NCBI GenBank assembly: GCA_965644315.1
Contig: CBFFRQ010000041.1
Coordinates: 124,001 to 188,000 of the forward strand
DNA: 64,000 nucleotides
Origin: Caecitellus pseudoparvulus
Lineage: Eukaryota > Protista > Bigyra: Bicosoecida
Direction of reading: 5' to 3'
Made by a program: the position numbers and the translations under genes. Below, piece after piece: positions 348 to 24,400 of the stretch (positions are counted from its first letter, which is position 1; each line of letters opens with the position of its first letter). The notes under the pieces are model-generated. The model was not told where the DNA came from. It saw nothing but the letters and a program-made list of their open reading frames with translations, and did not search any database.

Positions 348-2636
348 ATGCCCTCTGCAAAGCGCAGGAGCAAGCGCCCACGCGACGAGGAACCCTCCAC
401 ACCCACAGGCCTGCAACCTGGCGAACGCAGGTTTCAATGGGTGGGCGAGGGCACGCCCGGGGCAGGGGGCACAGTCGAGTATGCTGCGCTTCTGATCGAG
501 ACTGGCTTGGGCGGGGAGGAGACACACACGGCCACAGTGCACGTGGGGGACAATGTGCTGGTCAGGGTAAATGCCGCCGGGCAGTACAACGTGCGTCTGT
601 CCTGCTGCCCGTCCTGCGCCTCACCAGGCCCACCACCCCGCTTGAGCGCCTTCCTGCAGTCGCTGTCTGTGGCCCGCGTGGAGCGGCTGTGGCACGGCGA
701 GGGCGACATGTGGATGACCAGCCGGTGGTACTACCACCCCCACGAGATGCCCGCCTTGAGCGTCGCGGTGTCCCTGGCCCAGTGAGCAGTCCGCCCCGCT
801 GCCATGGCCTGTACCCGCCTGCACCCCCCCGTCCCACCCCCCCATGTCCACAGCGAGGTGTGCCCCACACAGCACAGTGACGAAGGCATGGTGCGGTCCA
901 TCGTGGGGCCAGTCCAGGTGCGCCGTGTGCCTGTGACGTGTCCTGATCCAGCTGGCGGGCTGGGGCACGGCCACCTGTCCATGTCCATGCGGGTGGGCAC
1001 AGTGGCCACGGCAGTGCAGGCGCTGAACGAACTCAAAGTGCGCCGCACCGAGGCGCAGACGACGCCCGCCCCGCCAGCGCTGCCAGGGGACGCAGAGGAA
1101 GCAGCGGCACTTGCTGCGCAGTACGTCGTGCGTTACGCGTGTGACTACGGCACCAAGCAGCTGTACCCCGCGCCCGGTGACACGATGGAGGAGGTGTGGG
1201 CGGCGCTGGCCCGCACGGGGCATGCAAGTGCTGTCAGCAGCAGCAGCGGGGTGGCACGGGCCGTGGCGGGGCAAGAAGGGGGCACACATTCCCATGCCGG
1301 GGCAGGTGTGGGGGGCAGTTTTGCGGGTGAGGCAGTGTCTGCGGAGGGGGACGGAGGTGACCCGTTGGGCGCGGCGTGTGAGGCGCTGCGCCTGAGCGCC
1401 ATCCCACCCGCGCTCCCGTGCCGGGAGGAGGAGAGGGAACACATCAAACACTTTGTGGGAAGTGCAGTGCAGCAGGGCGGACTGGGCTGCGCCCTGTACG
1501 TGAGCGGCATGCCCGGCACTGGCAAGACTGCCACGGTCAGTGAGGTGGTGCGGGAACTGCAGACAGAGAGCCAGCGTGGGCAGGACATGCCGCCATTCAT
1601 GTACGTGGAGGTGAACGCCATGAAGCTGAGCCACCCGTACCAGCTGTACACCACGCTGTGGAATGCCATCGCGCGGCAATCAGCGGTGGGCACGGGCGGC
1701 GCGTCGCGGTTCAAAGGCAAGCGCACGACAAAAGCGCTGCCCACCACCACTTCCACGCAGCGCGCAGTGCAGTTCTTGGACGCACACTTCACAAAACCGT
1801 CCACTCACTTGCCAACGGTGGTGTTGCTGGTGGATGAGCTGGACTACCTCGTCACACGCAAGCAAACCGTGCTGTACAACCTGTTCGAGTGGCCAACCCG
1901 CCCAGCGTCGCGGCTGGTGGTGCTGGGCATCGCCAACACCATGGACCTCCCGGAACGCATGCTGCCCAAGGTGCACTCCCGTCTAGGCATGGGGCGCCTG
2001 GTCTTCCAGCCGTACACGCGGCAGCAGATCTGCACCATCATCGCCGACAGGCTGTCTGCACTGCAGGCGTTCGACACCAAGGCAGTGGAGCTGGCAGCCC
2101 GCAAGGTGGCCAGCGTCTCAGGGGACATCCGCAGGGCCCTGCAGGTGTGCCGTGCAGCGGTAGAGCAGGCTCGAAAGCGGCGGGCAGCAGCGCCTGGCGC
2201 CGCCTCCCGGAAAGCTGTGCGCGTTGGCGTGGCAGATGTCAACGCAGCAGCACGCGCCATGGCCGCCTCCCACGCTGTGCTGTCAGTGAAGCAGGCAGCG
2301 CCCCTGGAACGCCTGCTGCTGCTGTCCCTCGCACTGTGCTTGCGTTCTGCAGGCACGGAGGGCGTGCCAGGCAGCATGGTGGTGCAGCGGGCGGCGGGCA
2401 TTCGCCGCACGGCGCTGGGCCGCAGCGACGAAGTGCCGCACCGGCAGTGGCTGCAGTGCATGGGGCGCCTGCTGGACTGCCGCCTGTGCCGCGCAGAGAA
2501 AGACACCAGCCGGGGCATGGGCGCCGCCACCAATGCTCTGCCTGCGCAGTTGAAGCTGAACGTGCAAGTGGACGACGTGGCGCTGGCGTTGCGCGAGCAC
2601 GCTCAGCTGGGCACCCTCGCGCAGCAGCTGCTGTGA
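348..2636 (+). CDS. ORC1: Origin recognition complex subunit 1 (BAH domain + AAA+ ATPase)
   Basis: BAH-like N-terminus (VARVERLW...WYYHPHE...HEVCPTQHSDE) joined across introns 591-659 and 782-853; LPCREEE, Walker A GMPGTGKT, Walker B LLVDELD, IANTMDLPER, SGDIRRAL. Confidence 0.93.
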
Positions 2637-2753: not shown

Positions 2754-5700
2754 ATGTACGGCTCAGCATCAGGGCGCAGTGATCGAGGGCGGTACGACCG
2801 CCCAGGTTCCGGTCCTGGGCGGGGCCGGGGGGGCTTTCGGGGAGGTCGAGGCCGAGGGGGGCGAGGAGGGGGCCGGCAGCCCAGCACGCGGCACAGGCAG
2901 GAAGGCGCCCGCTTCCGCGTAGCTGTGCGTGCGCCGCGGAATTTGAACGGCGCCTGTCGCAAGTGTGCGCTGCTCCGCCCAGCGCCTGACCACGCGCGCT
3001 GTGCCCTGTGCAGACGAACTTCTACTCCTCTGCCATTCGTGTCAGCGAGTTCCTGCAATACGGCTACGACGTGAAGGTGAGCCGTGGCGGTGCAGGGTCT
3101 CAGCCTGCGGCGATGTGCAGGTCCGCCGTGCACGTGCGCAGTTTTACACGGCGCCCCCCGAGGGAGAGCGCACTCTGCTGCCCGCCAGTGACCTGAAGGA
3201 CACATTGCGAGCTCTGCTCATTCACCGGGCGCTGGAAGACAAGTGAGTGCGCAGTGCGGCGCCGGCCAGTGCGGCGCAGTGCACCACTGGCTCACGGCTG
3301 CCCGCGCTGGTCACAGGCTGGGCAAAGACCGCGTGGCGCACCAGCGGGAGCTGGGCTCCATCTACGACGCAGCCCAGCGGGAGTCCAAGATTTTCCTGGT
3401 GCCGTCGGGCAACACCGTGTACACCACCCGCCTCCTGGGCGTGGACGGCTCGGGCGCGGCAGAGGAGTTCACTGCACACACGACCCTGCGCGGGAGGGAC
3501 GGCACCTCCACGGCCTACGAGCTGGACTTCACGCCCGTGGCAGACCTGTCCGACATGCCCGAGACGCAGCTGGAGGCAGTGGACAACGCGTACCTGCGCC
3601 GCCTGCAGGCCCTCATCCCAGAGGACTCTCGGCTGCTGGGGGCTGAGCACGTCCTGTCCATCGACAACGAGCTGGTGCTGGTGCCGTCCAGCGCCGAGGC
3701 ACAGCAGCACCAGGTGGGGCGGAAGGGGCTGGGCATGATGCCCTCCGTGCGCACCACCCGCCGCACGGTGGGGGAGGCCGCCTACCTCGTGGCCCGGGCC
3801 AAGACCAAGTGCATGTCCCTGGACCACATGGCCGGCAAGCTGGCCGCCTGCCGGGGGGACATCCGCGACTTCCTGGGGTGCAGCATCACCACCATGCACG
3901 GCGCGCGCCAGCGGCGGTCGTACCTCATCGCCGGCCTGGACAGCCAGCGGGCAGGGGACTACACCTTCGAGCACCAGGGCAGCAACATCTCCGTGGTGCA
4001 GTACTTCGCCCAGCAGTACCGCATCACCGTGCCGCCAGACGACTACCTGCTGAAGGTCATCCCCCGCCGCGACGCGCAGAAGATCGGCAAGCGCGCCCTG
4101 GCCCGCATCGCCGAGGAGGAGGGCAGGGAGGGACACCGCCCCCTGGCCCGCATCCCCGCCAGCACCGCGCGCCTGGTGGGCATGTCCGGTGCCGACCAGC
4201 GTGACTCGGAGGCGCGCCGGGACATGGTGCGCGTGGCGTCCATCGTCGCGCCAGAGGCCCGGCGACGCACGGAGGCGGTGGTGGCGGCTCTGCAGCGCGC
4301 CGACGCCAGCCTGGGCGGGGCGGTGGAGGTGGCGGGCAAGTACATGGGCCCAGCCAAGCTGCACGCGGCGCAGGGCAAGGCGCGCTTCCAGGCACAGAGC
4401 ATCCAGAGCAAGCCAGACGGCAACTTCACACTGGGGCGGGGCGGCTCCATTTCCGCAGGCGTGGACTGGGGAGCAGAGGTGGGCTCTGACTTCATCGTGG
4501 CGGCCACGGAGGCAGCTTGGCGCGACCTGGGCCACGTCATGGGCGGCTTGGAGCGGCAACTGCGTGCCATGGGCGTGGGGCTGGCCCAGGCGGCACACAT
4601 CCTGCGCCTGGAGGGGCGCGGCGAGGGCACGCAGTGGCTGGACCTCATCGCCAGCACGTACGAGGAGGCGCCGGCGGAGAACAAGCCGCGATTCGTGATC
4701 GTGGTGCTGGCGCGGCAGGATGAGGCGCTGTACTACGGCGTCAAGGCATACTCCATCTTCGGCCGCCTGCCCATCCCCTCCCAGTTCGTCATTGCACAGA
4801 ACTTCGAAAAGAAGGCCGACAAGCTGGCCGTGCAGCTGAGCGCCAAGCTGAACCGCAACGTGTACGGCTGCCCCGAGCTGCCTGCCGTCATGCAGCAGTT
4901 GTCCGGCAAGGCGCCGTACATGGTGGCGGGCGTGGACACGGCCCCCGGAGTGGCCACCCTCACCTTCACCCTGGACGCCTCCCTGTGCCAGACGGCGACG
5001 GTGTTCGCAGACTGCCCCCGCGGCAGTTCCCGCCTCCCTGTCGGGGAGCTGCTGCTGCGGGCGCTGGCGCTGTGGAACCGCAACACCCTCAAGTCCTCCA
5101 AGGTGGCCGCCTCCACGGGCGGCCGGGGGTACTTCCCCACGTGCGTGTACCTGTACCGCACAGGCGCGTCACAGGGCGTGCTGGACGCCCACGTCCGGGG
5201 CAGCCAGCCCCTGGTCATTGAGGCTGGCGACGAGAAGGATGCGCTGGCCTTCGAAGAGGTGCTGGGCGCAGTGCGCGCTGTGCCCACCGAGGCAGAGCAG
5301 CTGTGCTTCGTGCTCAGTCGGTGGGACGCCTACACCGGCGTGCAGCCCCAGCTGGGGTATGCCGTCATCCAGGCGGACACGGATGTGCGGCTGTGGGACG
5401 GGGAGAGCCCTGGCGGCAGCACCAACGTGCCCAACGGCACCGTCGTGGACAGCACCATCGTCGCGCCAGACTCCTTCGTGTACGTGCCCTGTGAGACCCA
5501 CATGGCCATGGGCCGCCCCATCGAGCACAAACTCGTGGCGGCGGTGGGGCCCACCCTCTCGACGGCGCTACAGGAAGGCCCCGACGGCGACGCGGTGCGG
5601 GGCTTGCTGCAGCGCGCCACCCGTGACTTCTGCTCCCTGTACTTCAACTGGCAGGGGCCCGTGCGTCTGCCCGCCCCCCTCGCCAAGGCCAAGCGTGCTG

Positions 5701-5948
5701 CAGAGCTCATCGCGGAGTGCCTGTCCAAGGCCAGTGGCGCAGTGCATGCTTGCGCTGCCGCAGCGACGCAGGGCGGCAGCACCTTCGCCCCGCCGCCCAC
5801 TGCGCCTGCAGGCATGGGTGACAGCGGCATCGCCCACGTGCACTCCGTGGCCGGGCAGGCCGGGGAGCAGGGCTTCTCGTCCCTCCTGGCTCAGCTGGCC
5901 GACCTTGGGTACGCGTCGGCACTGGCGCTGGGACAGTATGAATTGTAG
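2754..5948 (+). CDS. Divergent PIWI/Argonaute family protein (RGG-rich N-terminus, PAZ, MID, PIWI), predicted slicer-inactive
   Basis: Introns 2925-3013, 3077-3141 and 3243-3316 give GARFRVATNFY...YDVKF; PAZ-like ISVVQYFAQQYRI; MID YYGVK...PSQ...QLSAKL; PIWI MVAGVD, NVPNGTVVD, YFNWQGPVRLPAP. Confidence 0.88.
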
Positions 5949-16918: not shown

Positions 16919-19900
16919 ATGGCAGCGTCTATTGCCGCCGCCTCGCGGAGGTGAGGAGCGCGCTGCGTTCCCAGCTTGGTGTGCGGAATTTGAGCGCCGC
17001 CCTTCACTCGCAACAGGCGGAGCCGAGCAGAAGAGCAAGAGATCCTGAGGAGAATGCGACGGGCCAAGCGCATGGGCATCACGCCGCTGGCACTGCGTTG
17101 CAAGGAGGCACGAGCGGCAGGACTGAGCGGCCAAGACGACATGCAGCGCCTGCTGCTGCAGCAATTCCAGGAGCTTGACGTGGACAGAGAGGGCCTACTG
17201 TACATGAAGACGGTCAAAAGGGTCCTGACTGACGAACTGCCCAAGGTCATTCGGCTCGATGCAGGTGAAGTTGACTTCCTCCTCCACGCCTTGGACCCAA
17301 GCATGACAGAGCACGTGGACTACAAGCAGTTGCTGCAGGTCATGCGAGACTACTTGATGTTGCCAGAGTTGGAGCTGGTGAACCCCATCTTTCGAGACCC
17401 AAAGCAAGCAATCAAGCCGGGAGACGGCAGCAATGCCGGGTCGAGAGCTGGAAGGGTGCGCTCCGCCGCGGCACGGCACGCTCGCAGTTTGTCGCGCGAG
17501 GGGCGCGTCTCGTACCAGGAGCGAAGCTCAGGCCGCCTACATGCCCCTCGGGAGCTCACGCATTCAGCGCGGCTGGAACCCCTGTCACGGCATGCGCCTC
17601 TCGTTCCCCGCGAGGCGTTCCCAGAAGTGACCACGTCAGGGCGGCGACAGGGCGGCCTGCCGCCAACTTCCCCTGTCGCAGGCATGAGCGGTGAGCTGCA
17701 CACACAGCACAGTGGGTTTTTGGAGGGCAAAGAGGGCGAAAATCTCGTGCCATTGCCAAGAACAGCGGCTTCTGACCTCGGAGGAGGCTGGCTCAGCCCC
17801 ATGCGCCGAAGCCATAGCGCCGAGGATGCGGCTCAACTCGCAGCAGAAGCATTAAGAACCGCCAATCAAGGTGTGCAGCCTCCAGGGCGCTATCAAACGT
17901 TCAATCCCTCGGCTTCCATGCCCAACATTTCACGTAGCCTGGCTGAAGACATGGCGAGCATGGCAGGCGGTCATGCCCGCCCCCTGCCGTCGGCGCCAGA
18001 TCGTGAGCGACACGTCCCTTTCTGGGGCGTGGACATGCTAGGGCAAGCACATAAAGCCGAGTTGACGAGGAAACTCACTGAGGCCGCGAGTGGGGCCGCC
18101 GCTGCTGCCACCCCATCCAGCGCCTCGGGCTCCCTCGTCCGCGCTTCTGCACAAGCCCGAAACGATTCCAGCCTCATCCTGCCCCGTCAGGCTTCGCTGG
18201 AGAGTGGCAGCAGCCTGGACGACCTGGAGGTGTCCCTGACGGGGATGTCACTCACCGCGCCTGCCAGGGCTCGGCAGCTGGGCCCGGGGCTGCAGAACGT
18301 CGCCGGGCTGGCAGGCAGCAAGGGGGTGTTGTTCGGCAAGACGAGGGCCGAGGCATTCCTGACCCACCTCCGCACGGGTGTGGACACGCTTGGCAGGAAA
18401 ATCATGAGAAACCTTAGCTCCATTTCTCATCCTGAACAGTCCCCGAGACTGCGCAGTCCTGCAGTGGAGCAGGATTCACCTGCAAGCAAATCGCCTGAAG
18501 CTCCAGCACAGAAGCTGGGTGAGGAAGCCCTGGCCATCGTGCAGCAGCACACTGCAGCGCGAGAGGCATACGCAGAGACTTCCACTGCAGTTCCAGTACG
18601 GCCACAGGCGCTGGAGGGGGCACAGCGACTGGCAGCCTTGACGCGCCGCATCGAGCGATCTGTGTGTGCGGTGGCAATGCTGGTTTGGGCAGAACACACC
18701 GAAAGCATGCGGGCACGCGAGCAGCGGGTCTTTGTCGCGAAGTTCAGAGGAGCTGAGCGCTTTGCACGGGTTCTTCGAAAGCTCTTCCTTCGCCGAGTAG
18801 GACCACCTTTCATGCTGTGGCTGCACCGTGCGAAACCCGCCATTGACTCGCTCCGGAACGCGGCAGCCTCCAGCATCCAAGCAGCAGCGCGGGGTCATTC
18901 GGTGCGCCGAAGGCTACAGCGTGAGAAGGAAGCACGGGGGGCGTCAGCTCTGCAAAGTGTCGTGCGCATGCACTTGGCGCGCAAGGACTACATTCCCCGA
19001 CGCGACGAGGAGAGAGCGCATCGTTCAGCGACCCGCATTCAAGCGGCTGTGCGAGGCCGGCAGGGGAGAGCAAACGCGCAAAGACTCGCAGTGGAGCTGG
19101 AACGTGAGAGGGCTGCGCTCTCCATTCAAGCAGTTGCCAGAGGGCGCCAAGCAAGGCGGCGGGCGAGGGTGTACCAGCGAATGGCACGGGAAGTCAAGGA
19201 AACGCAGCGCTCCATTGCAGAAGCCCGCGAGCATGCCATGCGACACAGAGACAAAGCAAAAGCAGCAAAGAAGGAGCTGGAGATGTTCATTTCTGCCTCC
19301 CGAGATCGCAGGAAAGCTGAGCTGGAGGCGAAAGCCGCCGCTGATGCCAGTCGGGCAGCAGCGAAAGCTCGCACAGGGCAAGAGTCAATCACTCGACAAG
19401 CACTGCGGCAAGCGGAACGCATCGCGAAGGAACGCCTTGCACTAGAAGAGCAGGAAGCTGAGCTTGCCAAGAAAGCGGTGCAAGCTGCAAAAGAGGCACG
19501 TGACAGCGCTGTTGCGCTGCTTGCAAGGCGCAAGCGCGCCGAGGTGCGGCACGTCGCTGCGCTGCGCATCCAAGGCCGTTGGCGGGAGCACAAGCAGCAC
19601 ACTCTGGAGCGATTAAAACTGACACTGTCTTTGGGATCCACAACAGATGCAGGACTGCAGCGCACGCTGCTAGCGCAGGCAGAGACTGATGTTGTGACCC
19701 GCAAGGCCGCCGAAAAGGTGGCCGACGCAGCCAAGGCGCTGAAACTGGCTGGTGAGGTGCTGCAAGAGCACTCTGCAGCCGACTCTGAGAGCAAAGATGA
19801 ACAGCAGCAACCATTGAGCAGGTGTCAAGTCGCCATACGAGATGAGACCGTGCGAGTGGGAGCGGGCACGGTCGAAGCGCTGTCCGCAACGCTGCGCAGT

Positions 19901-21019
19901 CTGGCCAAGGCCGTGCGCCTGGAGCGCAAGGCTGCTCAGGACCAAATTGCCCAACTGCAAGCCGCCGAGTTGCATGCGGGGCGACAGGTTGAGCAGGCCA
20001 TCGCCGAGACGCTGCGAGACCCGATCGGCATGGCAGCCAAGCTCGAAGCGGGCACAGCGGGGGAGCTGCGTGTGCGCAAGTACCAATCCGCACTTGCCCG
20101 AGAGTACAGTAAGCGACGACGCAGGGCCAAGAGGTTCGGAAAACGGCAGCTTAGATGGCGCCGCCAGACTGAGCCGTGGGACTATGGCTTTGTGGCAGCG
20201 CGAGGCACGAACGTGCCCCCACAGCGCAAGTGGGTTAAGTTCTACGAGCCTGCAGCCGACGCCCTGTACTACGTTTCCACCACAACTCTTGAAAGACGGT
20301 GGATCCGCCCCACACAAGCCGAGGGGTACGAGACATCAGATAGCGAGGCGAGTGACGACGAAGTCGGACAGGCGCCATGGGCTGCAGGCATTTCTAAACG
20401 CCCAGGCGAAGCCTTCGCAGGGGAGGGCTTCGTCAAGACGATGGACCCGGCGGTCGTCGCAGCGCAGAATGCCCGGTGGAAAGCCTATGCCTGTGCAGAG
20501 TGTGCTGCGGCAAGGTCCACCCGGCGATGCGACGTGTGTGCCGAAGCATACTGCGACCGCTGCTTTGCTCTGCTGCACAAGCGGGGCAAGCGCACCATGC
20601 ACACGTGGAAGGCAGTCAGACCGTGGAATCCAGTTGAGCAACCAGGGAACCTGCTCCGTAAGGACGCATGCAGCGAGTGCCGCGTCGCCCCTGGCACGCG
20701 GAGATGTGTGCAGTGCAACGACGAGTTCTGTGGCACGTGCTTCGAGCTGACCCACCGATCAGACGCCTTGAAGTCGAAACATGCATGGGTGGAGACAGAG
20801 GCCGGCAAGCAGCAGACCCTCGCGTCTGAACGTAAGGGCCTTGGAGGGGTGGAACTATCAGTCGCACCGTCGCCTGCTGAGGTCGCTGAAGAGGATGTGC
20901 AGGAAGATGAAGGGTACTACGACGAGCATGGCGGGTACGTTGATGTTGATGGTGGGTACACGGATGCGGAGGGAGGATACACTGATGCGGCGGGGACGTA
21001 CTATCCTCCAGAGGCCTGA
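16919..21019 (+). CDS. Large protein with EF-hand pair, multiple IQ motifs, coiled coil, WW-like domain and two B-box zinc fingers
   Basis: Intron 16951-17016; FQELDVDREG/LDPSMTEHVDY; repeated IQxxxRG motifs; WVKFYEP...LYYVSTTTLERRWIRP; two CxxC...CxxC...CxxC...H...H units; GGYxDxxG acidic tail. Confidence 0.8.
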
Positions 21020-21495: not shown

Positions 21496-24400
21496 TCAAA
21501 TGAAGTCTTTCAAACTCGAAAACCTGGCAGCTTCCTGCCGCACACTGTCTGAAATTCTGCGATCACCAGCCAGGCTCAACAACTCATACATGGTGTCTGT
21601 GTGGCCATTGCGGCATGCCCGTCGGAAGGCGGCCTCAGGTCCATCCCTGTTCGCCGCGTGCACATCCACTGCCCGCGCCCCAGTCAGGCCCAACAGCTCA
21701 CGCACGATGTCGAGGTGGCCATTCTCGCATGCCAATCGGAAGGCCGCCTCAGGTCCATCCCTGTTCGCCGCGTGCACATCCACTTCCCGCGGCCCAGTGA
21801 GGCTCAACAGCTCACGCACGATGTCTGTGTGACCAAGGCGGCATGCCCATCGGAAGGCGGCCTCAGGCCCGTCCTCATTCGCCACATGTACATCCACCTC
21901 CCGCGCACCTGTCAGGCCCAACAGCTCACGCACGATGCCTGTGTGTCCGCCGGCGCATGCATCTCGGAAGGCGGCCTCAGGTCCATCCCTGTTCGCCGCG
22001 TGCACGTCCACCTCTCGCGCACCTGTGAGACCCAGCAGCTCACGCACGATATCTGCGTCGTTCCAGCGGCATGCCTGTCGGAAGGCGGCCTCAGGTCCAT
22101 CCCTGTTCGCCGCATGCACATCCACCTCCCGCGGCCCAGTCAGGCCCAACAGCTCACGCACGATATCTGCGTGGTTCCAGCGGCATGCCTCTCGGAAGGC
22201 GGCCTCAGGTCCATCCTTGTCAGCCACATGTACATCCACCTCCCGCGCCCCAGTCAGGCCCAACAGCTCACGCACGATGTCTGTGCGGCCCCGCTTGCAT
22301 GCCTGTCGGAAGGCGGCCTCAGGTCCATCCTTGTCAGCCACATGTACATCCACTGCCCGCGCCCCAGTCAGGCTCAACAGCTCACGCACGATGTCGAGGT
22401 GGCCATAGTAGCATGCCTCTCGGAAGGCGGCCTCAGGCCCGTCCTCATCCGCCACATGTACATCCACCTCCCGCGCACCAGTCAGGCCCAACAGCTCACG
22501 CACGATGTCTGTGTGGCCATGGAAGCATGCCCGTCGGAAGGCGGCCTCAGGTCCATCCTTGTCACCCACATGTACATCCACCTCCCGCGCACCAGTCAGG
22601 CCCAACAGCTCACGCACGATGTCTGTGTGGCCATTGGCACATGTGTACCGGAAAGCAGCCTCAGGCCCACGACCATCCGCCGCGTGCACGTCTACCTCCC
22701 GCGCACCAGTGAGGCCCAGCAGCTCACGCACGATGTCTGTGTGGCCCCGCTCGCATGCGTCTCGGAAGGCGGCCTCAGGTCCATCCTCATCCGCCGCGTG
22801 CACATCCACCTCCCGCGCACCAGTCAGGCCCAACAGCTCACGCACGATGTCGAGGTGGCGATTGCGGCATGCGTCTCGGAAGGCGGCCTCAGGTCCATCC
22901 TCATCCGCCACATGTACATCCACCTCCCGCGCACCTGTCAGGCCCAACAGCTCACGCACGATGTCTGTGTGGCCATGGAAGCATGCCCGTCGGAAGGCGG
23001 CCTCAGGTCCATCCTTGTCACCCACATGTACATCCACCTCCCGCGCACCAGTCAGGCCCAACAGCTCACGCACGATGTCGAGGTGGCGATTGCGGCATGC
23101 CCGTCGGAAGGCGGCCTCAGGTCCATCCTTGTCACCCACATGTACATCCACCTCCCGCGCACCAGTCAGGCCCAACAGCTCACGCACGATGTCGAGGTGG
23201 CGGTTGCGGCATGCGTCTCGGAAGGCGGCCTCAGGTCCTTCATCATCCGCTGCATGCACATCCACCTCTCGCGCCCCAGTCAGGCCCAACAGCTCACGCA
23301 CGATGTCGCTGCGACCCCAGCGGCATGCGTCTCGAAAGGCGGCCTCGGGTCCATGCCTATCCGCCGCGTGCACATCCACCTCTCGCGCCCCAGTCAGGCC
23401 CAGCAGCTCACGTACGGTGTGTGTGTGGCCATTGCGGCATGCCCATCGGAAGGCGGCCTCAGGTCCATCCTTGTCACCCACATGTACATCCACCTCCCGC
23501 GCACCAGTCAGGCCCAACAGCTCACGCACGATGTCTGTGTGGCCATTGGCACATGTGTACCGGAAAGCAGCCTCAGGCCCACGACCATCCGCCGCGTGCA
23601 CGTCTACCTCCCGCGCACCCGTAAGACACAGCAGCACACGCACGACCTCTGAGTGGCCATAGTTGCATGCCCATCTGAAGGCAGCCTCAGGCCCACGACC
23701 ATCCGTCGCATGCACATCGACTTCCCGAGCCCCAGTGAGACACAGCAGCTCACGCACGATGTCTGTGCGACCATTGCGGCATGCGTATCGGAAGGCGGCC
23801 TCAGGTCCATCCTCATCGGCCGCGTGCACGTCCACCTCCCGCGCCCCAGTGAGCCTCAATAGCTCACGCACGATGTCTGTGTGGCCATTGCGGCATGCCC
23901 ATCGGAAGGCGGCCTCAGGTCCAGCCCGATCCGCCGCATGCACATCCACTGCCTTATCCCCCGTCAATGAAAGCAGCTCACGCACCCTCGCAAGTCTGCC
24001 TTCCTTGCACGCTTCCACAAACGCAGCGGTGTTCTCCTCACTGAACCTCACTTTCTCCGGGGCGTGCACTGCCTGCGCCTGCCCTACCGAAGCACCTGCC
24101 TGCTCCCCATCAAGCACACTCCGCACTGCACTGTTCACACCTGACAAACGACCCACCTCACCTGTACTTCTCCCACACGCCATCGCATATGCACCCATGC
24201 AACAACCACTCCCTCCCCGCGCCAACACCTCCAACGCGCTCGACAGTGCATGCTCACCACCTTCACCGCTCCCCACGAAGCTTGACCCAACGCCCGAACT
24301 GCCCCCCAACGCACCACTCCCCACGCCAAGCACCTCACGCAGCACACCCAACACACCACCACTATCACCGCTGCCGCCATCAGCGCGACCTGTGCCCCAC

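Follow-up and report, generated by a model that had tools for sequence, protein, structure and literature searches.

Hypervariable ankyrin arrays as the probable binding modules of a large protein family in the marine protist Caecitellus pseudoparvulus

An array of 38-residue ankyrin units in the genome of Caecitellus pseudoparvulus is, in our reading, the C-terminal binding module of a large, lineage-restricted protein family that evolves under diversifying selection, a statement to which, taken as a whole, we assign a probability of about 0.6. The family bears the signature of a recognition repertoire, namely a fixed framework, a diversified binding face, a variable number of repeats and tens of paralogues. 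That it serves as a recognition repertoire of some kind is very probable in our judgement; a specifically immune role is suggested here only tentatively.

The window analysed comprises 64,000 nucleotides of contig CBFFRQ010000041.1 (positions 124,001 to 188,000 of the forward strand). Its GC content is about 67%, and the assembly from which it was taken measures 30.6 Mb in 215 contigs. The array belongs to a single gene, the parts of which are given in Table 1. The start was placed at the ATG at 25707, which is common to the paralogues and the metagenomic homologues; the consensus of 23 homologues begins at the same methionine. The neighbours of this gene in the window are ordinary housekeeping genes. 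Long plus-strand open reading frames also run across the array (e.g., 21601-23652), and these were rejected as genes, being stop-free frames of a GC-rich repeat.

Table 1. Features of the array gene, in positions of the window
Feature	Position	Strand	Remarks
Complete intronless CDS	21496..25707	-	1,403 residues plus stop; from ORF
N-terminal all-helical domain, residues ~1-228	25024..25707	-	AlphaFold model, pLDDT 85
Fold of protein-kinase type (probable pseudokinase), residues 229-514	24166..25023	-	Structural matches
Linker, residues 515-557, poorly conserved, low confidence	24037..24165	-	pLDDT 36-43; dN/dS 0.49 among paralogues
Lead ankyrin unit, degenerate, N-cap-like; kept as cap in paralogues	23923..24036	-	
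20 core 38-residue ankyrin units, fixed scaffold, hypervariable positions 8, 11, 12, 37 and 38	21643..23922	-	
Last ankyrin unit: canonical first half, divergent C-cap second half	21529..21642	-	
C-terminal tail of ten residues, ending ...FSSLKDFI, and stop codon	21496..21528	-	
Neighbouring units 8 and 9, near-identical	23011..23238	-	4/114 bases differ
Unit 13, same bases throughout as unit 5 (23467-23580)	22555..22668	-	

Tandem Repeats Finder reported a period of 114 bp with 20.9 copies, 83% matches and 0% indels over positions 21564-23949 (score 2758). In the minus-strand ORF, the motif GPEA occurs 21 times at a spacing of exactly 38 residues, which together with a degenerate lead unit gives 22 units. 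A preliminary description of this DNA had proposed an ankyrin array of 22 such units at 21560-24027. The number of units, their length and their ankyrin identity were all borne out (Pfam Ank_2, E = 7.6e-125, 408 bits against a cut-off of 27.3 bits), and the Ank, Ank_3, Ank_4 and Ank_5 models were likewise far over their cut-offs on the array protein; the array itself is real, but its true span is 24036-21529. The period of exactly 38 residues departs from the canonical 33, and alignment to PDB ankyrins placed five inserted residues in each unit: one after G-P, one in L-T-G and three before V-D-V. The A-A-x-x-G-H / V-x-x-L-L framework of ankyrins is retained in residue alignments to 4qfv, 4o60 and 9jxq, and AAFR stands in place of TPLH in all 20 core units. 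Both 34- and 38-residue variants of the unit are used by related metagenomic proteins. At the N-terminal end of the array, the lead unit was modelled as two helices (unit positions ~1-11 and ~15-25), and its nearest match is unit 1 of a paralogue on contig C95 rather than any unit of its own array. At the other end, the C-cap and the tail motif are common to paralogues L011, L037 and L043, and a more divergent version is found in L009.

No variation occurs at 17 of the 38 positions in the 20 core units, and the fixed scaffold residues include G1, P2, E3, A4, A5, F6, R7, C10, V18, R19, L21, L22, L24, T25, G26, R28, V30, D31, V32 and H33. Entropy in the same units reaches 2.2-2.7 bits at positions 8, 11, 12 and 37. 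Family statistics were drawn from 42 loci and from genome match tables; among 372 distinct units of the family, positions 8, 11, 12, 37 and 38 each exceed 3 bits, and 12 scaffold positions lie below 0.5 bit. Units are 79% identical overall; the figure rises to 87% for scaffold positions and drops to 28% for the hypervariable ones, and tryptophan and arginine make up 7.5% and 10.9%, respectively, of the residues at the variable sites. The variability attributed earlier to helix 1 was confirmed and extends to the end positions of the hairpin, 37 and 38. The whole hairpin pentapeptide, however, which had been described as widely variable, is not so, since positions 34-36 vary only to a moderate degree among the 372 units.

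By phmmer alignment to solved natural and designed ankyrins in the PDB, unit positions 8, 11, 12, 37 and 38 correspond to ankyrin consensus positions 10, 13, 14, 2 and 3. On this sequence-based mapping, the five hypervariable sites are not scattered but coincide, as had been anticipated, with the surface randomised in DARPins and other synthetic ankyrin libraries, that is, helix 1 and the hairpin tip, and their side chains are predicted from the same alignments to be exposed. The site at ankyrin position 14 corresponds to a position that is randomised in DARPin libraries. The other four sites match the positions randomised in the ANK-N5C synthetic library (2, 3, 10 and 13; PMC4308713). The natural array and the synthetic binders are thus alike in having a consensus framework, capping repeats and variable residues at the hairpin tip and on helix 1. 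However, ankyrin position 5, which is randomised in the synthetic libraries, is fixed in the natural array, and this counts against full equivalence. The natural units also differ in their 38 residues with five insertions and in the frequent occurrence of glycine at variable sites, and natural arrays reach 22 or more units joined to other domains, whereas synthetic binders have 2-5 units.

Selective constraints were estimated as dN/dS from independent pairs of units, with held-out controls in which separate codons were used for pairing and for testing. A first estimate (omega 3.9-4.9) was biased, the units having been paired on the dS codons, and was superseded by these split designs. Mutual information between variable positions, within units or between adjacent units, was inflated by the shared ancestry of duplicated units and was not used. 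In the separate-codon design, dN/dS was 1.8-2.3 at the five hypervariable codons (lower 95% bounds 1.5-1.9) and 0.21-0.29 at the scaffold, these figures being pairwise values for units that are recombination mosaics and not the output of a recombination-aware codon model. A ratio above 1 at the variable codons, on which the preliminary description had staked its claim of diversification, was therefore found with the pairing bias controlled. Part of the excess may reflect the shuffling of old variable codons rather than new substitutions. The multi-nucleotide codon changes that had been noted at the variable residues were also recovered: in pairs of near-neighbour units, changes of two or three bases made up 60% of the differing hypervariable codons, compared with 11% of the differing scaffold codons. 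For example, units 8 and 9 are distinguished by hypervariable codon 8, in which every base differs (Asp to Arg), and by one silent change. The evidence supports diversifying selection on a receptor-like repertoire.

The 30.6 Mb genome encodes the N-terminal region at least 74 times in intact form without internal stops, and many of these copies lie in tandem clusters; the open frames that contain them measure 359-1,932 residues, almost all exceeding 600. As the preliminary description had expected of paralogues, repeat number varies widely among these copies, the smallest arrays having about 3 units and the largest over 30; the complete genes retrieved have 3-12 units and the gene in the window has 22. 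Match lists from the genome also revealed about 30 or more array loci with no copy of the N-terminal region nearby, and for two of these arrays, L006 and L012, its absence was confirmed by sequence. For half of all units, the closest relative sits in another gene, and identical or near-identical units recur at non-adjacent places. Units 13 and 5, which lie eight units apart, share an exact match of 174 nt, which we read as left behind by duplication or gene conversion at the level of units. In a set of 1.84 billion protein clusters, the N-terminal region is represented only about 20 times, and an annotated search with it gave 9 matches, none of them named and all from ENA metagenome assemblies. 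Logan contigs from four runs contained fragments of 100-300 nt within the gene that cross-match paralogues, and none of these spans the array. A library labelled metatranscriptomic and flagged as probably DNA held fragments 90-95% alike to the N-terminal region.

The two domains that precede the array and linker are under purifying selection, with dN/dS among paralogues of 0.39 for the helical domain and 0.35 for the kinase-like domain. The best structural match of the latter was the MLKL pseudokinase 4m67 (VIA-align, Z 14.1, rmsd 3.7 A, 219/264 residues aligned), a score that, to within about 1.5 Z, equals those of many other kinases, including RIP2, the JH2 domains of JAK2/TYK2, and FGFR (Z 12.4-13.9). 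Its Foldseek matches were kinases only (best E 7e-3), and a Pfam search gave no kinase (Pkinase) match to the array protein. In addition, the beta-3 lysine, HRD and DFG motifs are absent from the invariant and near-invariant columns of 23 homologues, with the motif positions placed by predicted secondary structure. On these models and alignments, the domain is probably a pseudokinase. For the helical domain, no recognisable fold relative was found in the PDB (best Z 6.9 over only 51 residues; Foldseek E >0.3) or in the ESM Atlas (TM <=0.36), and a language-model feature search returned nothing usable. The order of a helical domain before a kinase-like domain is shared with MLKL. However, the helical domain modelled alone gave no match above noise to the MLKL four-helix bundle (HeLo-type) in the PDB or ESM Atlas, and Foldseek aligned the whole protein to MLKL 4btf only weakly (E 0.06, rmsd 23.6). 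RIPK4 and ANKK1 carry ankyrin repeats after a kinase-type domain, an order that the array protein also shows. None of MLKL, RNase L, ILK and RIPK4/ANKK1 has sequence similarity to the array protein by Pfam, and none forms a large hypervariable family. Neither NACHT nor NB-ARC matched the array protein in Pfam at E <=0.01, and the analysis detected in it neither a death domain nor an immune signalling domain of any known kind.

The closest precedents are the repeats of fungal NOD-like receptors (NLRs) and the Nek and Protein 21.1 proteins of Giardia. Giardia encodes 198 Neks, of which 71% are catalytically dead, and in 133 the kinase domain is followed by 1-26 ankyrin repeats; kinase-less 21.1 relatives occur as well, and the Nek family differs among strains (Manning et al. 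2011, PMC3218828). Like the family described here, it is a protist-specific expansion in which mostly inactive kinase domains are followed by a variable, lineage-specific ankyrin subtype, and it is evolutionarily dynamic, with kinase-less ankyrin relatives and an obscure function (PMC3218828). The Caecitellus proteins might then be cytoskeletal or scaffolding components, and their variable residues would mark paralogues specialised on different endogenous partners, with no recognition of non-self. A Giardia-like split is present between the copies of the N-terminal region and the array loci without one, yet we consider this explanation unlikely. First, the repeats of Giardia have a TALM motif and show divergence throughout, whereas the array units have A-A-F-R at the corresponding residues in 20/20 core units and are near-identical with a few hypervariable sites. 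Second, Giardia possesses recognisable Neks with no extra N-terminal helical domain described, whereas the kinase-like domain of the array protein is not recognisable by sequence as a Nek or as any kinase. Third, the variation is limited to five binding-face positions and, even when neighbouring units in the same protein are compared, outpaces silent change, so that the binding of a fixed set of cellular partners is hard to accept as its explanation.

Fungal NLRs, in Podospora anserina and others, possess highly internally conserved ANK, TPR or WD repeats, with ANK arrays of up to 21 units (Dyrka et al. 2014, PMC4986451). These genes and the array gene are alike in their near-identical tandem repeats with few positively selected positions on the inner helices and hairpin of the concave ankyrin face, and the families are alike in variable repeat number and in shuffling within and between paralogues. 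However, a kinase-like fold and a helical domain precede the array instead of NACHT or NB-ARC, the units have 38 residues rather than 33, the host is a marine protist rather than a fungus, and the unit identity of 79% is under the 85% cut-off used for fungal NLR repeats (PMC4986451). In allorecognition, Podospora uses repeat domains in the same regime of internal conservation, few positively selected surface positions and repeat-number polymorphism (PMC4986451), which speaks for self/non-self or mating-type recognition within the species, as by fungal heterokaryon-incompatibility genes, instead of pathogen sensing. We give this explanation little credence, since a family of at least 74 paralogues is far beyond the numbers in known incompatibility systems.

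Also to be weighed is a neutral origin as a by-product of concerted evolution, in which conversion homogenises the units while a few unconstrained positions drift. The traces of unit duplication and conversion agree with such a process, and whole-codon differences could be imported from other units without new mutation. However, unconstrained sites cannot surpass the silent rate, and divergence at codon positions 1 and 2 of the hypervariable sites was 2.5-3.9 times that at four-fold silent sites (lower bounds >=2.0). The variable codons also lie only a few bases from scaffold codons, and conversion tracts would homogenise both unless selection opposed it. In addition, the variable sites fall where ankyrins are known to bind their targets, and we regard a neutral origin as very improbable. 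The preliminary description had also offered a recognition code read repeat by repeat along a polymer; the array would then resemble TALE or PPR proteins, each unit recognising one monomer of a nucleic acid or of a repeating extended peptide. Despite the large number of units in tandem, with two or three positions on a single helix face that resemble specificity determinants, the binding of extended peptides along the groove of long ankyrin solenoids and the presence of an ankyrin-1/ankyrin-2 repeat chimera (4rlv) among the PDB matches of the array, this idea is to be set aside as extremely improbable, since the 372 units hold 197 distinct triplets at positions 8, 11 and 12 and 319 five-residue sets, with no small dominant alphabet, and are therefore library-like rather than a small code, and we know of no ankyrin protein that reads nucleic acid bases unit by unit.

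Under the reading that we favour, of a binding module diversified by selection, the proteins consist of a helical domain, a kinase-like and probably inactive domain, and a capped ankyrin solenoid. Each unit is an ankyrin repeat of the canonical type, lengthened by insertions to 38 residues. Of these, 33 are conserved, and five, displayed on the helix-1/hairpin face, would be maintained as different from one unit to the next and from gene to gene. Units would be duplicated, lost and converted, both inside a gene and from one gene to another, which would reshuffle variable codons already present, and selection would retain the diversity produced in this way, so that the genes together would form a germline-encoded repertoire of differing binding surfaces. 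The proteins may be cytosolic receptors for variable, probably foreign, proteins of viruses, parasites or other cells, with binding relayed via the pseudokinase and helical domains. It is possible, though on balance doubtful, that they represent an undescribed class of protist innate immune receptors, in which the solenoid senses viral or parasite proteins, the pseudokinase acts as a switch and the helical domain is a new effector.

Free-living marine protists suffer heavy attack from giant viruses and parasites, and to our knowledge their defence and recognition systems are almost unknown. The domain architecture of this family is not in use among known immune receptors. If the innate-receptor interpretation were true, the family would be a non-NLR solution, arrived at convergently through germline repeat shuffling, to what the NLRs of fungi and plants and MLKL-type death effectors achieve. 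Should the family prove to be a receptor system, repeat shuffling would be a source of receptor diversity outside fungi, plants and jawless vertebrates as well, and the genes of the family would offer a naturally occurring library of stable ankyrin binders with 38-residue units.

The ankyrin array reported in the preliminary description is real, because Tandem Repeats Finder detected a 114-bp period at 21564-23949 (20.9 copies, 83% matches, 0 indels, score 2758), the motif 'GPEA' recurs in the array protein every 38 residues exactly, 21 times, and Pfam matched the units to ankyrin repeats (Ank_2, E 7.6e-125). However, the span given there, 21560-24027, was not exact and is corrected in the table. 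The gene encodes a helical and a kinase-like domain (together, the N-terminal region) followed by the array, and its start methionine, common to 23 homologues, lies at 25707, giving a protein of 1,403 residues. Antisense and out-of-frame ORFs of up to 683 residues also cross the array, for example at 21601-23652 of the plus strand. The long plus-strand ORFs were rejected as genes, as they are periodic stop-free frames of a GC-rich repeat and nothing points to genes. Plus-strand GC skew is strongly negative (-0.21 to -0.32) at 22001-26000, which matches the Gly/Val/Ala/Ser-rich coding strand of the gene, most strongly for the Gly-rich loops that were modelled with low confidence in the kinase-like domain. 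The neighbours in the window are ordinary eukaryotic genes (ORC/Cdc6, PAZ-Piwi, FHA-WD40, ADA2 and a chromo-domain protein). The C-terminal tail of the adjoining 1,321-residue protein comes from a 21-bp tandem repeat of four copies at 20906-20990.

Features of the ankyrin-array gene and selected neighbours in the window
Feature	Coordinates	Strand	Remarks
ORC/Cdc6-like AAA ATPase	804-2636		adjoins the Argonaute-type gene
Argonaute-type protein	3243-5948	plus	PAZ and Piwi domains
1,321-residue protein	17054-21019	plus	adjoins the array gene; IQ motifs, two ANCHR-like B-box zinc fingers
Array gene	21496-25827	minus	single unbroken ORF, bacterial start rule; conserved start methionine at 25707
Ankyrin array, exact span	24036-21529	minus	one degenerate lead unit, then 21 'GPEA' units; followed by a ten-residue tail

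Among the 20 core units of the array, 17 of the 38 unit positions are invariant, and entropy reaches 2.2-2.7 bits at positions 8, 11, 12 and 37. Within the array, identity between units is 87% over the 33 scaffold positions but only 28% over the five variable positions. In the family, 372 distinct full units, drawn from the fetched part of the family loci, showed entropy above 3 bits at five positions (8, 11, 12, 37 and 38) and below 0.5 bit at 12 scaffold positions. Searches of PDB sequences with phmmer gave residue-level alignments of the array units to ankyrins, both designed and natural: ANK-N5C (4qfv and 4o60), 1n0r, DARPins and Kidins220. By these alignments, each unit has five insertions, a single residue after G-P, another in L-T-G and three ahead of V-D-V, and its length is therefore 38 rather than 33. 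In these alignments, unit positions 37, 38, 8, 11 and 12 correspond to ankyrin consensus positions 2, 3, 10, 13 and 14. DARPin libraries are randomised at positions 2, 3, 5, 13, 14 and 33. The ANK-N5C library was randomised at positions 2, 3, 5, 10 and 13, plus 33, and its crystal structures place the randomised positions on the beta-turn and helix 1, where they form an uninterrupted surface for binding (PMC4308713). The AlphaFold model of the N-terminal region also includes the lead unit, whose helices occupy unit positions ~1-11 and ~15-25. The i, i+3, i+4 spacing of positions 8, 11 and 12 brings them to one side of the helix. Homology mapping to solved ankyrins thus places the five variable positions as probably exposed on the ankyrin binding face, in agreement with the earlier assignment to helix 1 and the hairpin.

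Within the array, NG86 proportions gave a pN of 0.60 at variable codons, a pS of 0.31 overall and a pN of 0.016 on the strict scaffold. Selection in the family was tested on disjoint nearest-neighbour unit pairs. An initial dN/dS estimate was discarded, because pairing and dS relied on the same codons, which biased it upward; in the replacement design, units were paired on half of the scaffold codons, and dS was taken from the remaining half. A second test, free of transition/transversion assumptions, took the first two codon positions of the five sites and compared them with four-fold sites in held-out scaffold codons. As pairwise figures over units that are recombining mosaics, rather than estimates from recombination-aware site models, dN/dS at the five sites was 2.26, 2.22 and 1.79 in three designs (lower 95% bounds 1.89, 1.90 and 1.52), and the four-fold ratios were 2.9, 3.9 and 2.55 (lower bounds at least 2.0). 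Scaffold dN/dS in the split-codon design was 0.21-0.29. Both tests thus place the variable sites above 1, which supports the diversifying selection proposed earlier.

Among differing variable codons, 60% show 2-3 base differences, compared with 11% in the scaffold. For example, the neighbouring units 8 and 9 (23238-23011) show just 4 base differences, namely all three bases of codon 8 and one silent change elsewhere. In addition, units 5 and 13 are identical, units 10 and 14 differ by two bases, and a 174-nt exact match recurs at an eight-unit distance within the array. For roughly half of all units, the nearest relative by scaffold belongs to a different gene. The simplest reading is that unit duplication and gene conversion move existing variable codons, in which case whole-codon changes need not be new multiple substitutions. 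Unit-level duplication and conversion, within and between genes, would carry pre-existing variable codons around an invariant background against which conversion boundaries would be invisible, and selection would counter homogenisation of the five sites.

In the 30.6 Mb genome, the N-terminal region has at least 74 matches free of stop codons. The open frames that hold them range from 359 to 1,932 residues (almost all >600), and many of the matches form same-strand tandem clusters with a spacing of ~5 kb. The contig of the window carries a second member of the family (G000 C41:108515-111502 in the source assembly), ~12.5 kb ahead of the start of the window; the match table shows a single in-frame TGA in the array region of this member. 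The array query gave 99 matches from 485 first-look candidates, and comparison of the two match lists left ~30 or more array loci with no N-terminal match nearby. At two of these loci, L006 and L012, the sequence starts directly with an ankyrin cap; arrays of the 38-residue type with no such match also occur at G000 C54, ~236900-263000. Paralogues differing in repeat number, as envisaged earlier, do exist: complete genes in the fetched loci have 3-12 units, compared with 22 here. The C-terminal cap and tail motif is conserved and recurs in several paralogues. Outside the genome, the N-terminal region had 9 matches among 5.8 billion proteins, all unnamed and all from ENA metagenome assemblies, and ~20 representatives among 1.84 billion clusters. 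The one homologue contig inspected carries eukaryotic genes, and public sequencing runs located relatives in marine metagenomes. Related arrays have 34- or 38-residue units; in locus L007 (G000 C23) and many metagenomic proteins (P0021-P0053), the two lengths alternate or switch, the four-residue difference falling within the hairpin and the start of helix 1.

Residues 1-595 had no Pfam match. An AlphaFold model of the N-terminal region from 23 homologues (pLDDT 79, pTM 0.78) retrieved only kinases in Foldseek, with weak E values (best 7e-3). VIA-align on this model revealed a clear protein-kinase-like fold at residues 229-514, with the MLKL pseudokinase as the best match (Z 14.1, rmsd 3.7 A, 219 residues aligned), followed by RIP2, the JH2 domains of JAK2 and TYK2, FGFR and others (Z 12.4-13.9). 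Because no beta-3 lysine, HRD loop or DFG motif was found among the invariant or near-invariant columns of the 23 homologues, we infer that this domain is a pseudokinase. Residues 1-232, modelled separately (pLDDT 85), matched nothing better than noise, either in the PDB (best Z 6.9, over 51 residues; Foldseek E >0.3) or in the ESM Atlas (TM <=0.36), and these searches gave no support for an MLKL-like four-helix bundle. Comparison of paralogues shows purifying selection on both domains (dN/dS 0.39 for the helical and 0.35 for the kinase-like domain).

The main rival explanation is a scaffold family of the Giardia Nek/21.1 type, which has in common with the family described here both a pseudokinase plus variable ankyrin architecture and kinase-less relatives (PMC3218828), the Protein 21.1 relatives of Giardia Neks being paralleled by our arrays with no N-terminal match nearby. 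However, the fixed scaffold with hypervariable sites is absent from Giardia Nek/21.1 (PMC3218828). The preliminary description also suggested a per-repeat recognition code; a small code of this kind is unlikely, because among the 372 units positions 8, 11 and 12 form 197 distinct triplets, and the five variable positions together form 319 distinct sets. Our results support a repertoire of ankyrin binding surfaces that is encoded in the germline and diversified by selection. In one metagenomic homologue (P0008), the same helical and kinase-like region is followed by two ankyrin units and then a long Sel1-repeat array; thus, the N-terminal module pairs with different repeat types, a likeness to NLR families. 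The ankyrin, TPR and WD repeats of fungal NLRs evolve under the same regime (PMC4986451), and by this analogy the family may function as immune receptors.
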